Sequence record: MW349129.1
Direction: 5' to 3' (one strand)
Length of the DNA: 64,000 bases
Shown here: positions 7,135 to 31,693 of the stretch, piece after piece
Numbering within the stretch: position 1 is the stretch's first letter
How the letters are laid out: every line of letters starts with the position of its first letter
The notes under the pieces: generated by a model
Database searches by the model: none
The model's input: the letters and a program-made list of their open reading frames with translations, nothing else
Told to the model about the DNA's origin: nothing
Position numbers and translations under genes: made by a program

Positions 7135-7167
7135 GCGTAACATAAGACATTTTTAATATATATTATA
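7135..7167 (+). promoter_or_regulatory. Early-type promoter GCGTAAC-N15-TATATATTATA
   Basis: Exact bipartite motif, followed by ATGAAG and a hairpin. Confidence 0.7.
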
Positions 7168-7224
7168 ATAATGAAGATATAATAATATCAATTATATCTT
7201 TAATAAAATAAAGGAGAAATTAAA

Positions 7225-8173: not shown

Positions 8174-8200
8174 CGTGTAATAAAATAAGTATATATTATA
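8168..8200 (+). promoter_or_regulatory. Early-type promoter GCGTAAC-N15-TATATATTATA
   Basis: Exact bipartite motif. Confidence 0.7.
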
Positions 8201-8259
8201 ATAATGAAGATAGATAGAATATTATCTATCTTTAATAAAAATCAAATGGAGGAATTGAA

Positions 8260-9529: not shown

Positions 9530-9549
9530 TAAAATAAGTATATATTATA
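9517..9549 (+). promoter_or_regulatory. Early-type promoter GCGTAAC-N15-TATATATTATA
   Basis: Exact bipartite motif. Confidence 0.7.
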
Positions 9550-9610
9550 ATTATGAAGAAAGAGATTATCATTAACTCTTTCTAATAAAAATCATAGAGG
9601 AGAAATTAAA

Positions 9611-9896: not shown

Positions 9897-10406
9897 ATGA
9901 TGAAAAAATTTAACCAAGAAATGATCAACAAAATTCAAGAGGCTATGTTACCTTTATTAAAAGAAGAATTAGGAAATGAAATTGAAACAGTAGAATTTAA
10001 AGTAGAAGATAGATTAGCAATTAATTCACTTTTCGTAACAGCACAACAAGAAATGGCAGCGAAATTAACTAAAGGTGGATTTAACTTAGATAAGACAGTA
10101 TTCATCTTCTCGGACAAAGCTCCAGAATACAAACCTGTAGTTTCTATATACCAATCAATAAATAAAGTAACTTCTTTAGGATCAAAAAGAAGATTTGTTA
10201 AAAGTATTTTAGAAACAATCGCACATGAATATCGTCATGCATACCAATTCATCAATGGACAAATTGATGTTGAGAAATTCATCAGAGGAGAATATAGCTA
10301 CCAAAGTGCTTCTCAATATAAAGCTCTTGAGACTGAGAAAGATGCATTTGCATTCCAAGCAGAATTCTCTAAGAAGTATTTCAAGCAAGTTTTAAAAGCA
10401 TTATAA
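9897..10406 (+). CDS. Zincin-like metallopeptidase
   Basis: HEYRHAYQ (HExxH) with a downstream ExDA motif (ETEKDAFAF). Confidence 0.7.
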   Translation: MMKKFNQEMINKIQEAMLPLLKEELGNEIETVEFKVEDRLAINSLFVTAQQEMAAKLTKGGFNLDKTVFIFSDKAPEYKPVVSIYQSINKVTSLGSKRRFVKSILETIAHEYRHAYQFINGQIDVEKFIRGEYSYQSASQYKALETEKDAFAFQAEFSKKYFKQVLKAL

Positions 10407-14423: not shown

Positions 14424-14434
14424 TATATATTATA
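14424..14434 (+). promoter_or_regulatory. Early-type promoter core TATATATTATA
   Basis: Motif followed by a hairpin, upstream of 14491. Confidence 0.5.
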
Positions 14435-14490
14435 AATTTGAGATTAATGATTTATTATTAATCTTTAGACTTAAAAAATAAAAATTAAAG

Positions 14491-16470: not shown

Positions 16471-17100
16471 ATGAAAAATAAAATAAATCTATTTGATTGG
16501 TATATCTATAAAAATGGAATGTCAACAATACTTCCTCTTTTATTTAATGTAATTTTATCTTCAACACTGGTAACATTATTTATTCTTATATTGTCAATTA
16601 ATACTAAATTAGCATTATTATCTTTATTAATATTTATACCAATGATAATTACCTCTATATTTATAAATATAATATTCTTTAATAATAATATTATGACAGA
16701 ATATGGATTAATAAATAACTCATTTAAAGTAAAAGATAAATATTATTCATTTTGGCATATTGAATTAAATGAAGATGACGAGGTTTTTAAAGAAGCTTTT
16801 AACAATTTTAAAGATAGACATGAATGGATTATAGAAGAGAAAAATGTGAAAAATCTATCAGAAATATTGTTAAGAGGATCTTTTATAAGAGATACTAAAA
16901 TATTGGAACCTGTAATGAGAGAAAATAATAGAAAACATTGGAAGAACAATATTGACACAAATAGACTGTTAACTTATAGAGAGTTTCTTAAATATAAAAA
17001 GAATAAAAAGAAATTTGAAGAGTCTAAGAAGTTAGAAAAGGAAATAAAAGAGTTTCAAGATTACTATAATTTAAACACAAAAGGAGAAATTAAAAAATGA
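16471..17100 (+). CDS. Membrane protein with two N-terminal TM helices
   Basis: 209 aa; AAGGAGG RBS. Confidence 0.65.
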   Translation: MKNKINLFDWYIYKNGMSTILPLLFNVILSSTLVTLFILILSINTKLALLSLLIFIPMIITSIFINIIFFNNNIMTEYGLINNSFKVKDKYYSFWHIELNEDDEVFKEAFNNFKDRHEWIIEEKNVKNLSEILLRGSFIRDTKILEPVMRENNRKHWKNNIDTNRLLTYREFLKYKKNKKKFEESKKLEKEIKEFQDYYNLNTKGEIKK

Positions 17101-18539: not shown

Positions 18540-18550
18540 TATATATTATA
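18540..18550 (+). promoter_or_regulatory. Early-type promoter core TATATATTATA
   Basis: Motif followed by GATGAAG. Confidence 0.55.
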
Positions 18551-19460: not shown

Positions 19461-19471
19461 TATATATTATA
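19461..19471 (+). promoter_or_regulatory. Early-type promoter core TATATATTATA
   Basis: Followed by ATAATGAAG and hairpin GAAGATAAAT...ATTATCTTC. Confidence 0.65.
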
Positions 19472-19530
19472 ATAATGAAGATAAATATTATTAATATTAT
19501 CTTCAATAAAAAAAAAGGGAGTTTTATATT

Positions 19531-19824
19531 ATGGCAAAATTAAATGAAGAAATATTAAGAGATTTTCAAGTAAGAACTGAGATTGATGGAGAATTTGAAG
19601 TAATGGAATCTGATGAGCTCGGTGTTGATGAAGCTTATGAGAATGAATTAATTAAAGAGTTGGGGGTAGATGTAGATTCAAGCGTATTTTCTTATGCAAT
19701 AGCAGAAGTAAATGATGAAGAAAATATGTATACCTTAGAGTATAGTCATGAAGGTGTTCTACTAACTATTCATGATTATGATGAAGATTATGTACCACAA
19801 ACTATTTATAAAAACATAATCTAA
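19531..19824 (+). CDS. Acidic DNA-mimic protein, candidate uracil-DNA glycosylase inhibitor (Ugi/SAUGI-like)
   Basis: 97 aa, 27 D/E versus 5 K/R; ES(D)E motif; NMY..LLTIHDYDED segment aligns by eye to SAUGI as recalled; monocistronic. Confidence 0.55.
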   Translation: MAKLNEEILRDFQVRTEIDGEFEVMESDELGVDEAYENELIKELGVDVDSSVFSYAIAEVNDEENMYTLEYSHEGVLLTIHDYDEDYVPQTIYKNII

Positions 19825-19835
19825 TAATTTAAATT

Positions 19836-19866
19836 ATAGCTGATATCTTTAATGGATATCAGCTAT
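19836..19866 (+). terminator. Intrinsic terminator hairpin
   Basis: ATAGCTGATATC / GATATCAGCTAT followed by a T-rich tract. Confidence 0.8.
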
Positions 19867-19908
19867 ATTATTTTAATTTTTTTACTTAAAGGAGATGAAA
19901 GGGATAAT

Positions 19909-20520
19909 ATGAATTATTTTGAATTGGAATATACAGGTTTAATTGATAATAATGAATTAGATAATGCAGTTTTACACAAACAAGAAAATGAAGAAATTGA
20001 ATCGGGTCTTTTAAATATGATTTTATTTAAATTGTTTCTAAAAGAATTTTATAATGTCAATATGGATGATAATGATTTATGTAAAAAACTAAAAATAGAA
20101 ATAAGAAGTATTCATAGTTATAATAATTCAGAAATTTATATTAATGAAGACTTTGCTGAAATATATAATGGTATTAATCCGAATAATAATATTAAATCAG
20201 GAAAAATAAATAAAGATTATGAATATTTATTTAAATTTATTAAAGATAATATAAATGAAAAAGATTTAAATAATATACATGTGATTAAATTTACAACATT
20301 TGAAATAGAGAAATATAAACCTGTTGTGATTTTTATAAACTCAGATAAACTTAGAATTAAGACCAATAAATCAATTAGTAGATATACATCAGCAAATGAA
20401 TTTGTATTCTATAATATTTCAAGCGAAAGTTTATATAGATTAATGAAAAATACAAATAGAATAAGTAATATAATGGAAAAAGAATATAAAAATAAATTAG
20501 TTAAAAGGAGTTTCTTATAA
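19909..20520 (+). CDS. Hypothetical protein with the shared C-terminal tag
   Basis: Start moved to ATG 19909 (after AAGGAG); ends ISNIMEKEYKNKLVKRSFL. Confidence 0.65.
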   Translation: MNYFELEYTGLIDNNELDNAVLHKQENEEIESGLLNMILFKLFLKEFYNVNMDDNDLCKKLKIEIRSIHSYNNSEIYINEDFAEIYNGINPNNNIKSGKINKDYEYLFKFIKDNINEKDLNNIHVIKFTTFEIEKYKPVVIFINSDKLRIKTNKSISRYTSANEFVFYNISSESLYRLMKNTNRISNIMEKEYKNKLVKRSFL

Positions 20521-21059
20521 TGTATGAAGTTAGTAAAAAATTTAAATATGATAAAAGAGATAAAGAATTCACATTATTCCACCATAAATCAAAAGAAGAA
20601 ATAACTGACTCATTTATAATTAATAATTATATTTCATATGTAATATATCAATGCTATGAGAGAACACCAGGAAATGCAGAAGTATGGATAGAAATTATTG
20701 ATATAAAACGTAATTTATTATCTAAATTTATATTTGATAACAGACCATCTTTCGGGTCTAATTATTTTCCTAAGTGTAATGTAGGTATACAAGATAATAG
20801 CGATAATAATATTGTAACTATTGAATTTAGTGATAAATATAAAAGACATAATTTCATTTTAGAGAAAATATCTAAATTTAATAATGTACTTATTAATTTT
20901 TATAAAGAAGAATTATTTCCTTATGAAGATAAAGAACTTACTTTATTAAAAACTGTATTTAAAACTAATGACATTAAATTTTATCAAGATAAAGGTTTAA
21001 TTAGTTATATTTCAGATAAAGAAGCTAGAAAAATTTTAGTAAAAGAAAACTTTAAATAG
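20520..21059 (+). CDS. Hypothetical protein with the shared C-terminal tag
   Basis: Ends ISYISDKEARKILVKENFK. Confidence 0.65.
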   Translation: MYEVSKKFKYDKRDKEFTLFHHKSKEEITDSFIINNYISYVIYQCYERTPGNAEVWIEIIDIKRNLLSKFIFDNRPSFGSNYFPKCNVGIQDNSDNNIVTIEFSDKYKRHNFILEKISKFNNVLINFYKEELFPYEDKELTLLKTVFKTNDIKFYQDKGLISYISDKEARKILVKENFK

Positions 21060-21075
21060 AATAGGGGTAAACAGA

Positions 21076-21615
21076 TTGAATAGATACTTTAAATTTAAAT
21101 TAAATAATAAAAGTGATTACGATGTATTTAAATTTTCAGGAAATGAGGAAGAAATAAGTGATTCTAAAATTATAGAATCTTATTTTGCTTATATGTTTAA
21201 TTATTATATAAATGAAGCAATACCTGACTCTAGTATGATTAATATTGCTGTATTTACTAGAGGTGAAGGAAAGAGATTATTGAGATTTTCTATAGATAAA
21301 CCACCAATTTATATAAAAGAGCCAGTTAGTAGTTTATTATTTATGAATGAAAATGATGAAGAAAAACAAATTGATTTTAAAGAATTTGATGAAATTAAAA
21401 AGTTTATACATGAAAAGATTATGGAATTGAATAAAGATGAATTTTGTATTTACATTGATTATAATTTTGATTTTTCTTATAATATAGTTTATGATAAAGT
21501 ATTTGATGGGGTATTATTTGTTAGAGACAATCTAAATTTTTATATTCAGTCTCATATTAAAGAAACAGGTGAAAATGAATATAAAAATTATCTAGTGAGG
21601 GAGAATTTTAAATAA
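21076..21615 (+). CDS. Hypothetical protein with the shared C-terminal tag
   Basis: Ends IKETGENEYKNYLVRENFK. Confidence 0.65.
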   Translation: MNRYFKFKLNNKSDYDVFKFSGNEEEISDSKIIESYFAYMFNYYINEAIPDSSMINIAVFTRGEGKRLLRFSIDKPPIYIKEPVSSLLFMNENDEEKQIDFKEFDEIKKFIHEKIMELNKDEFCIYIDYNFDFSYNIVYDKVFDGVLFVRDNLNFYIQSHIKETGENEYKNYLVRENFK

Positions 21616-21636: not shown

Positions 21637-22413
21637 ATGGAATACGTTATGATAAATAAATTACTAACAAAAAATGATTCATCTGAATTAAAACTAAATA
21701 TGGTCAAACCGTATAAAAAGGAAGAAGACTTTTTCAATTTCTTTTTAAACTTTATTATAGAATATAATTCATATCATATAGGAAATTATAAATACTTTTA
21801 TAGTATAAACTCATTATCAGATTATAATTCAGATTATCAAATAAATGGAAATCCTTATGTACCATTTGAGGAAGGAATAAAGGTAAATGAAGTTATTCAT
21901 ATTTATAAAAATAAATTATTTAGAAATATAAGTAAAGACATTGAAAATAGAATAATTGTACTTTATGTAGAAGATAAAGAAGATGATATTTCCTTTTATA
22001 TATTAACATCTAATTACTTTAATAGAAAATTTAAAAAAGAATATAAAGAAGAACTTTTCGATAAAGAAGAAATATTATCTAGACTTATAGTAAAATCTTT
22101 TCTAAATGAAAAGATTTTATTAGATTCACATTCAGAATTTTTAGTTATTAAAGATAAAGAAAAATTAAGCAATTTAATTACTAATTTAATGAAAAATCAA
22201 AAATACAAAATTTTAAACTTTGATTTCTTAAGTAATAGTGAATTAAAATATAGTAGAATACTATTTAATAAAAATGTATATGATAATAAATTAGTCCTAA
22301 AACATTTAAAAGGAATAAGTTACAAAGATATTATTGATAAAGATAAAGAGAAAATTACATTTATAGATAAAGAAGATTACAAACATTTAGTAATTAAGGA
22401 ATCATTTAAATAA
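21637..22413 (+). CDS. Hypothetical protein with the shared C-terminal tag
   Basis: Ends ITFIDKEDYKHLVIKESFK. Confidence 0.65.
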   Translation: MEYVMINKLLTKNDSSELKLNMVKPYKKEEDFFNFFLNFIIEYNSYHIGNYKYFYSINSLSDYNSDYQINGNPYVPFEEGIKVNEVIHIYKNKLFRNISKDIENRIIVLYVEDKEDDISFYILTSNYFNRKFKKEYKEELFDKEEILSRLIVKSFLNEKILLDSHSEFLVIKDKEKLSNLITNLMKNQKYKILNFDFLSNSELKYSRILFNKNVYDNKLVLKHLKGISYKDIIDKDKEKITFIDKEDYKHLVIKESFK

Positions 22414-22491: not shown

Positions 22492-23151
22492 ATGAGTAAT
22501 TATTTATATCGTTTTAACAAAAAGAATGTAAATATCTTCTATCATAAAAGGACTAATAATGGTCATAAAATGTTATTTAATAATAGCAATGATAAAGATA
22601 GATCTATATATTTAATAAATACTGATGAAGAAATCAATAATATGGAACTAGTATCTAAATATATTGCTGGAAAAGTATTTGAAACACTAAACCAAGAAAA
22701 TATGAAAATAGTGCATATGGATTTCTTTAATAGTAAATTAGAATTCTTTATAAGTAGATCATCCAAGAATAAATATATAATGAATATGTATTTTAGTTTA
22801 AAAAGTTATAATGATTTAATAGAAAATGAAAAAGAATTTATAGATAGTGTTAATGAACTTAATTTAGACTTTTTAAAATCAGTTTCTTTAGATCAAGACA
22901 ATAATCATATATTGGATATGACATTAATATTTTTAATAGATAAAAATAAAATAGATGAATTTATTAAAAATCTATTTTATATTAATTATATAAAGATAAT
23001 AGAATTTATAATAGATAATATATCTGTATATGCAGATGATTATAAGAAATTTAATGAAGAAATAAATATTCTTTTGGATCATAGAAATTTTATAGAAGAA
23101 ATAACATATAAAGAATATAAAAAGATAATGACGAAAGAGATGTTTATTTAA
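22492..23151 (+). CDS. Hypothetical protein with the shared C-terminal tag
   Basis: Ends IEEITYKEYKKIMTKEMFI. Confidence 0.65.
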   Translation: MSNYLYRFNKKNVNIFYHKRTNNGHKMLFNNSNDKDRSIYLINTDEEINNMELVSKYIAGKVFETLNQENMKIVHMDFFNSKLEFFISRSSKNKYIMNMYFSLKSYNDLIENEKEFIDSVNELNLDFLKSVSLDQDNNHILDMTLIFLIDKNKIDEFIKNLFYINYIKIIEFIIDNISVYADDYKKFNEEINILLDHRNFIEEITYKEYKKIMTKEMFI

Positions 23152-31354: not shown

Positions 31355-31693
31355 TTACTGATTAGGTAAAGTTCCGCCTTGAGCTGTTGAAGGATTTTCA
31401 GGATCTTCTTCTTGAGGTTCTACTTCTGTAGCTCGACCAATACCTTGAACTTCAGAATCTTCTACTGAATCATCAACAATATGTTCTTCATCAATAGGAT
31501 CTATTTCTTCAACTAATTCTTCGTCTTCAACATCATCACTAGATAATGTTTCTACATCATTTAATTCATTCAAAACTTCTCCAACAAATAATCTCAAATT
31601 ATTACCTTCAGAGACTTCATTTAATTCTAAAACACCTTTAGCTACTAATGTAGCATGAAAAGTTACGATAAAAGATTTTTTATTTAAACTCAT
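31355..31693 (-). CDS. Hypothetical protein with an acidic tail
   Basis: 112 aa; GGAG RBS. Confidence 0.6.
   Translation of the reverse strand: MSLNKKSFIVTFHATLVAKGVLELNEVSEGNNLRLFVGEVLNELNDVETLSSDDVEDEELVEEIDPIDEEHIVDDSVEDSEVQGIGRATEVEPQEEDPENPSTAQGGTLPNQ

Follow-up and report, generated by a model that had tools for sequence, protein, structure and literature searches.

Gene 034 of the Staphylococcus phage Madawaska (CPT_Madawaska_034; QQO92691.1; positions 19531-19824, plus strand), which is annotated as “hypothetical protein” in GenBank, encodes a protein of 97 aa (gp034) with a predicted Ugi/SAUGI fold that is probably the Ugi-type inhibitor of uracil-DNA glycosylase (Ung) of these phages, made immediately after injection and blocking the Ung of S. 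aureus via b1 and a2. The predicted structure, the register of the functional motif, the genomic logic and the architecture of the expression unit support this assignment; what we infer is that expression is early, that Ung is targeted and how the protein docks. gp034 represents a new sequence family and is a probable Ung inhibitor. The DNA analysed here, referred to as the window, comprises 64,000 nucleotides identical to bases 1-64000 of the Madawaska genome (MW349129.1), which has a size of 265 kb and a GC content of 25% and belongs to one of the MarsHill-like S. aureus jumbo phages.

Phages with uracil-containing DNA must neutralise the Ung of their host. Phage S6, which carries an orthologue of gene 034, was directly shown to contain uracil DNA, and DNA from the MarsHill-like phages behaves as thymine-to-uracil substituted (Korn et al.). 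The uracil-DNA phages that infect hosts other than Bacillus (among them MarsHill, Madawaska, Machias and S6) are reported to be without a recognisable Ung inhibitor, which has been termed a paradox, and every inhibitor candidate tested from such phages was negative (Muselmani et al. 2023). Since all the candidates tested in these phages were negative, an inhibitor-free strategy is conceivable, and alternative protection strategies were considered possible by the same authors (Muselmani et al. 2023).

The failed candidate of MarsHill (QQM14549.1) is not gp034 but the orthologue of the open reading frame at 9897-10406 of the window (plus strand). The latter encodes 169 aa and corresponds to the “Ugi-like” candidate that had been retrieved by PHI-BLAST and was negative for Ung inhibition (Muselmani et al. 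2023); its HEYRH motif, which is HExxH-like, hints at a metallopeptidase-type protein. The candidate of phage S6 is given in a figure image only (Muselmani et al. 2023). The stop-to-stop frame of the S6 orthologue of gp034 fails two of the published filters, namely acidity (26.1% vs 12-24%) and the acid-free-stretch filter, and should therefore not come out of the pipeline of 2023, so that it was probably not the protein tested there. A literature search that covered few of the subscription journals retrieved no paper which assigns gene 034, and no virion-proteome evidence for gp034 was found in the paper on phage DC4.

gp034 contains ten aspartate and 17 glutamate residues, thus 27 acidic residues (28%), together with three lysine and two arginine residues, and has a pI of 4.05. 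The count on the annotated CDS agrees with the first-pass annotation, which had reported 97 aa with 27 acidic and five basic residues. No other small open reading frame of the window is as acidic. The second in this respect (31355-31693, minus strand; 112 aa with 30 acidic and five basic residues) has a long tail rich in D, E and P, lies amid structural (tail fibre) genes and is probably unrelated to gp034. The ribosome binding site of gene 034 reads GGGAG in the sequence (19517-19521, plus strand), and the one annotated in GenBank spans 19518-19521.

Orthologues of gene 034 with 53-100% identity were detected by tblastn in all ten Staphylococcus jumbo phages of our collection (Madawaska, MarsHill, PALS_2, LY01, DC4, S6, AH12, Machias, PB50 and SA1) and in no other member of the collection. 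A profile search against 1.8 billion representative proteins added three metagenomic relatives with 29-36% identity and one PepSY-repeat protein. Neither search returned a homologue from Listeria phage LPJP1 or Yersinia phage phiR1-37. One of the metagenomic relatives is encoded on a 14-kb contig that is colinear with positions 12.4-23.9 kb of the window. According to dN/dS ratios of 0.11-0.26 against close orthologues gene 034 is under purifying selection.

The surroundings of the gene differ between the phages. In S6/DC4 and in Machias an extra gene of 93-101 aa is inserted between the orthologues of genes 033 and 034 (1142-1423 of the S6 locus L005; 815-1120 of the Machias locus L013), which is absent from Madawaska, MarsHill, PALS_2 and LY01; its Machias copy carries an annotated HHpred match to 5CYB_A. 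On the contig of a metagenomic relative (L003, 2944-9088) at least five tandem paralogues of a membrane-protein-like gene were found, of which Madawaska has one (16471-17100); this family is locally expanding in the early region. Furthermore, just downstream of the terminator of gene 034 four consecutive genes on the plus strand (20520-21059, 21076-21615, 21637-22413 and 22492-23151) end in a common C-terminal motif (...LV[KR]ENFK, ...IKESFK, ...TKEMFI). They resemble a family of tandem paralogues and have no extended early-promoter motif upstream.

Gene 034 itself is preceded by a putative early promoter of the type recognised by the virion RNA polymerase of AR9 (TATATATTATAATAATGA; 19461-19478, plus strand), which was assigned by enrichment of an extended motif and has its core in common with the promoter of the AR9 Ugi gene. 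The early promoter consensus described for MarsHill is TATATTAT (Korn et al.). This 8-mer is barely enriched in the window, with 53 copies found vs 38.8 expected. The longer motif TATATATTATAWNWNTGA, derived by aligning the intergenic copies of the 8-mer, occurs nine times vs 0.73 expected (12-fold enrichment), a number that was reached in none of 100 shuffles.

A 5' stem-loop (19476-19505, plus strand; -8.2 kcal/mol, z -3.5) starts at the sequence GAAG, which coincides with or adjoins the presumed start of the transcript. Behind the gene follows an intrinsic terminator annotated in GenBank (19835-19880, plus strand) with a 14-bp stem, a 5-nt loop and a T-rich tail, the RNA fold of 19835-19867 plus the T-tail reaching -19.3 kcal/mol (z -6.7). 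Motif enrichment and the folding z-scores thus bear out the promoter, the 5' hairpin and the terminator of its own that had been ascribed to the gene from its sequence. The description as monocistronic holds as far as its own promoter and terminator are concerned, but no terminator lies between gene 033 and the promoter of gene 034, so that read-through from the promoter at 18540 is possible.

The same architecture recurs in the homologous loci. In all nine loci read the promoter TATATATTATA...TGAAG stands upstream of the gene, and a 5' hairpin of the form GAAG...CTTC, differing in sequence, is present in eight of them. The terminator stems differ in sequence yet pair in nine of nine loci, and the T-rich tail TTATTTTAATTTTTTTA (19868-19885 in the window) is nearly identical across them despite the differing stems; the phage RNA polymerase may use it as a specific signal for termination. 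As at gene 034, a stem-loop that starts at the GAAG/GAGA of the presumed transcript start directly follows most copies of the extended promoter in the window (7157-7200, 8190-8235, 9539-9580 and 14424-14470 on the plus strand; 43026-42985 on the minus strand). The early promoter of the AR9 Ugi gene is without a 5' hairpin, and the promoter-adjacent hairpin, possibly a peculiarity of the Staphylococcus jumbo phages, may stabilise the 5' end of the mRNA or be related to the polymerase.

In DNA with 25% GC, AT-rich motifs and short open reading frames arise easily, and taking into account that TATATTAT is hardly enriched one could suppose that the frame is not a functional gene or that its flanking signals are chance features. 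This seems extremely unlikely in view of the low dN/dS ratios, the conservation down to 29-36% identity in syntenic context, the 12-fold enrichment of the extended promoter, the pairing of the terminator stems in each of the nine loci and the confidence of the structure models described below.

The AF2 model of gp034, based on an 8-sequence alignment, reached a pLDDT of 91.9 and a pTM of 0.84, and a second AF2 model, that of the most distant homologue (P0012; about 36% identity), a pLDDT of 91.6, both models resting on one shared, shallow alignment of 8-11 sequences. In the gp034 model the elements follow each other as a1 (residues 2-16), b1 (22-31), a2 (32-44), b2 (51-59), b3 (62-72), b4 (77-83) and b5 (89-94), and both predicted models present the two-helix, five-stranded antiparallel order a1-b1-a2-b2-b3-b4-b5 of Ugi.

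A Foldseek search of the gp034 model against the PDB placed SAUGI or Ugi-2 chains on ranks 1-6 and Ugi chains on ranks 10, 11 and 13. With VIA-align the Z-scores amounted to 9.9 for Ugi-2 (83/86 residues), 9.7 for Ugi (80/83 residues, rmsd 2.4 A) and 9.3 for SAUGI. The best of the unrelated folds reached 5.4; the aligner's own notes state that models without a true match commonly have a best Z of 7-8. A scan of 48,161 PDB representatives, which was independent of Foldseek, was led by Ugi-2 (9.6), SAUGI (8.3), MCUGI (7.3) and Ugi (7.2), with cystatins and LolA at no more than 6.3. The P0012 model returned the identical four inhibitors in the top four, and over both models the inhibitor matches ranged from Z 7.1 to 9.9. 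Among the viral models of the BFVD the best matches from outside the family were a 121-aa protein and then the Ugi of PBS2, and among the structures of the ESM Atlas the first row was a SAUGI cluster (PF06106). The AFDB contained no match above TM 0.5 among 2.3 million cellular fold clusters. The first-pass annotation had named a fold unrelated to Ugi/SAUGI as the outcome that would speak against an inhibitor; the best PDB matches proved to be Ugi, Ugi-2, SAUGI and MCUGI, and gp034 is confidently predicted to fold like the Ugi/SAUGI inhibitors.

The second row of the ESM Atlas search consisted of 64 unannotated 96-aa proteins of Bacillota that matched with TM 0.62/0.63 over 85 residues, equal to SAUGI. 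This cluster may represent a further Ugi-fold family that has gone unrecognised, or copies of the gp034 family from prophages or metagenomes.

The fold as such is a common a+b arrangement, since cystatin, PepSY and LolA domains reach Z 5-6, and gp034 could accordingly be regarded as a generic helix plus meander sheet of the cystatin/PepSY type, that is, as a small, acidic and unrelated early protein that might resemble protease inhibitors or serve in host takeover. Like gp034, the PepSY and cystatin domains consist of a helix followed by an antiparallel meander sheet. Their matches together with those of LolA (Z 4.7-6.3), the frequency of best Z values of 7-8 without a true match and the precedent of p56-fold homologues, which lack inhibitor activity in spite of confident AF2 models (Muselmani et al. 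2023), are in line with such a protein, as is a weak profile match: residues 12-75 of the gp034 profile match a metagenomic protein of 508 aa (P0011; library search E 9e-6; by hhalign E 0.015 with a probability of 3%). P0011 is a secreted protein of six PepSY repeats, on which the Pfam PepSY domain was confirmed, and the gp034 profile gives no sequence signal of this strength to either Ugi or SAUGI. However, the Pfam PepSY model (PF03413) does not match gp034 even at E 10, and the match to P0011 may be due to chance or to a very remote relation of the a2-b2-b3-b4 part to PepSY domains. The PepSY and cystatin domains furthermore differ from gp034 in their lower Z-scores (4.7-6.3) and in being without the N-terminal a1-b1 unit, whereas the Ung inhibitors score 9.6-9.9 and are matched along almost the entire chain, a1 and b1 included, and four separate inhibitor clusters stand at the top of 48,161 chains for two models. 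Due to these structural scores the PepSY lead was set aside, and a generic fold of this kind is considered quite unlikely.

At the sequence level the relation of gp034 to the known inhibitors is not visible. The protein had no relevant match in Pfam, in PHROGs or in a phmmer search of the PDB, and a PDB profile search with the family alignment gave the same result. Pfam UDI (PF18880) and SAUGI (PF06106) matched neither gp034 at E values up to 10 nor its relatives; in the positive controls PF18880 scored the AR9 Ugi with 1e-46 and PF06106 scored SAUGI with 3e-63. Comparing the gp034 family with a Ugi alignment by hhalign yielded a probability of 0.07%, and the comparison with SAUGI was not significant for a single sequence and gave E 0.25 for an alignment of 15 sequences that had been gathered with a degenerate DNA pattern. 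The profile comparison which the first-pass annotation had proposed as a check thus detected, with hhalign and Pfam, neither Ugi nor SAUGI. Plasmids yielded no SAUGI match by tblastn, and the ESM Atlas feature search with gp034 produced chance-level matches only. Pairwise Smith-Waterman scores of gp034 vs Ugi were also at chance (z -0.7 to 0). The missing sequence signal carries little weight, since a comparison of Ugi with SAUGI, whose structural relationship is accepted, likewise ends at chance level (z -0.4).

The SAUGI segment quoted in the first-pass annotation is letter-perfect and corresponds to SAUGI residues 65-86, as checked against the PDB. Its proposed ungapped pairing with gp034 residues 65-86 is the top BLASTP alignment (6/22 identities; E 0.98) and agrees with the structural register, but with a BLOSUM62 score of 23 and a shuffle p of about 0.02 it is weakly above chance, and the sequence similarity is not significant.

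The register between gp034 and the inhibitors was read from alignment ranges, not from a residue-by-residue printout. Truncated Ugi chains align such that model residue 21 corresponds to Ugi 15 and model residue 19 to Ugi 13, and because of this offset of 6 the pair E26-S27 of gp034 falls on E20-S21 of Ugi; the P0012 model gives the equivalent offset. Relative to SAUGI, of which residues 19-44 and 65-86 were checked against the PDB, the offset is 0: E26-S27-D28 and D33-E34 of gp034 share their residue numbers with E26-S27-I28 and D33-D34 of SAUGI, and the best hhalign path, which is not significant, runs from 26-84 to 26-84. The parallel between the ES of the segment VMESDEL and the ES motif of Ugi/SAUGI, which had been drawn by eye, is thereby sustained, as the structural register sets E26-S27 on the ES of ESI.

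An invariant Glu on b1, an acidic motif E-x6-[ED][ED] and a hydrophobic pocket have been described as common to all Ugi/SAUGI variants (Muselmani et al. 2023). The predicted Ung-docking region of gp034, that is strand b1 and the start of a2, comprises residues 22-34 (FEVMESDELGVDE; codons 19594-19632, plus strand) and includes the invariant E26 and S27 as well as the acidic motif E26-x6-D33-E34. By the inferred register E26 takes the place of the b1 Glu (Ugi E20, SAUGI E26), and it is invariant in all 11 family members, which are eight sequences from Staphylococcus phages and three metagenomic ones. A motif scan found E-x6-[ED][ED] in register (E26...D33-E34) in eight of eight Staphylococcus-phage members and absent or shifted in the three metagenomic relatives, in one of which Ser27 is replaced by Val. 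In the alignment conserved hydrophobic residues occupy plausible positions of a pocket (L30, I41, L44, Y55, Y67, L78 and I80). Position three of the ESI motif deviates from the pattern E-[ASVFHTNI]-[LVIFMTPWC] with its hydrophobic third residue, gp034 reading E26-S27-D28, the Machias-type members ESN and the distant relatives ESV or EVA. According to Ugi mutagenesis the set tolerated at this position is [LVIFMTPWC], without any charged residue; Asp and Asn are both outside it.

The deviation at D28, which puts Asp in the place of the hydrophobic third residue, the four acidic residues on b1 and an acidity exceeding that of Ugi and SAUGI (28%) would also suit a DNA mimic of the same fold that is directed against another DNA-binding protein of the host, for instance a nuclease involved in restriction or defence, a nucleoid protein or a different repair enzyme, the uracil DNA being protected otherwise. 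The failure of several predicted candidates from these phages in the assay points in the same direction. However, every solved protein that matches this fold at Z >7 is an Ung inhibitor, the b1 Glu, the only residue that all of them conserve, is invariant and in register in the gp034 family, and a phage with uracil DNA obviously needs Ung inhibition. Taken together, another target seems unlikely, and Ung is regarded as the probable target of gp034.

As an Ung inhibitor gp034 presumably acts as follows. Once the uracil genome enters the cell, gene 034 would be transcribed from its own early promoter by the phage RNA polymerase carried in the virion, giving a short transcript bounded by the 5' hairpin and the strong terminator. 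The edge strand b1 (residues 22-31), which carries E26 and S27, would insert into the DNA-binding cleft of Ung together with the acidic residues D33 and E34 at the beginning of a2, and the leucine by which Ung intercalates into the minor groove would be trapped in a hydrophobic pocket that a2 forms with the sheet, in the manner of Ugi and SAUGI. gp034 would thus be a stoichiometric inhibitor of the family-1 Ung of the host that blocks the excision of uracil from the phage DNA.

Due to its confidently predicted Ugi/SAUGI fold gp034 is a single testable candidate for the missing inhibitor. Being concrete and cheaply testable, it turns a published open question into an experiment on one protein. 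If the assignment is true, gp034 would explain the protection of the genome in these transducing S. aureus phages and would extend the Ugi/SAUGI fold by a third branch that is unrelated in sequence, widening its tolerated sequence space to Asp at the third position of ESI. It would further imply that such inhibitors are found by fold-based searches rather than by heuristic sequence searches, and gp034 might become a new reagent for blocking Ung, like those employed in base editors.

gp034 also bears on the origin of SAUGI in SCCmec. A link between Ugi and SAUGI via gp034 is attractive, as gp034 stems from Staphylococcus phages, is colinear with SAUGI and has an intermediate length. Pairwise and profile comparisons provided no statistically significant sequence support for a link between Ugi, gp034 and SAUGI, and it appears rather doubtful that the gp034 family is both the Ung inhibitor of the non-Bacillus uracil-DNA jumbo phages and a phage-borne intermediate between the two families. 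Were gp034 such an intermediate, staphylococcal mobile elements would have acquired SAUGI from a gene of the gp034 lineage in jumbo phages, and Ugi, gp034 and SAUGI would form one ancient, fast-evolving phage family instead of convergent look-alikes.

Among the known systems p56 of the phi29-like phages and Vpr of HIV share with gp034 the proposed function, the block of family-1 Ung by a DNA mimic, but their folds are unrelated to the predicted fold of gp034, and neither is among the structural matches. Ugi of PBS1, PBS2 and AR9 and Ugi-2 of vB_BpuM-BpSp (Pfam UDI, PF18880; PDB 1UDI, 1UGH, 1LQM, 8AIM) resemble gp034 in being small acidic proteins of AR9-like uracil-DNA jumbo phages and in having the topology predicted for gp034 (Z 9.7-9.9 over 80-83 aligned residues), with the b1 Glu-Ser and the acidic pair that opens a2 in register. 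The Ugi gene of AR9 (g104) likewise stands behind an early promoter of its own, which is annotated and shares the TATATATTAT core, and its 15-bp terminator stem directly after the stop codon corresponds to the layout of gene 034. The position of gene 034 is not syntenic with g104. gp034 differs from Ugi in its length (97 aa vs 84-89 aa) with a longer a2 region, in reading ESD instead of ESI, in its higher acidity (28%) and in having no counterpart to the second acidic pair in the Ugi pattern E-x6-[ED][ED]-x-[ED][ED].

The SAUGI family encoded in SCCmec, which includes MCUGI1 and SeUGI (PF06106; PDB 3WDG, 5AYR, 6LYV, 8AIN, 9IRO), is associated with Staphylococcaceae like gp034. Unlike gp034, SAUGI is chromosomal on a mobile element and not phage-borne, and comprises 112 aa with a C-terminal extension. 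The predicted fold of gp034 matches SAUGI with Z 8.3-9.3 over 87-88 aligned residues, and in the colinear numbering of both proteins E26, S27, E29 and D33 are identical and D34 of SAUGI aligns with E34 of gp034, while strand b1 of MCUGI1 has E26, L30 and G31 in common with that of gp034.
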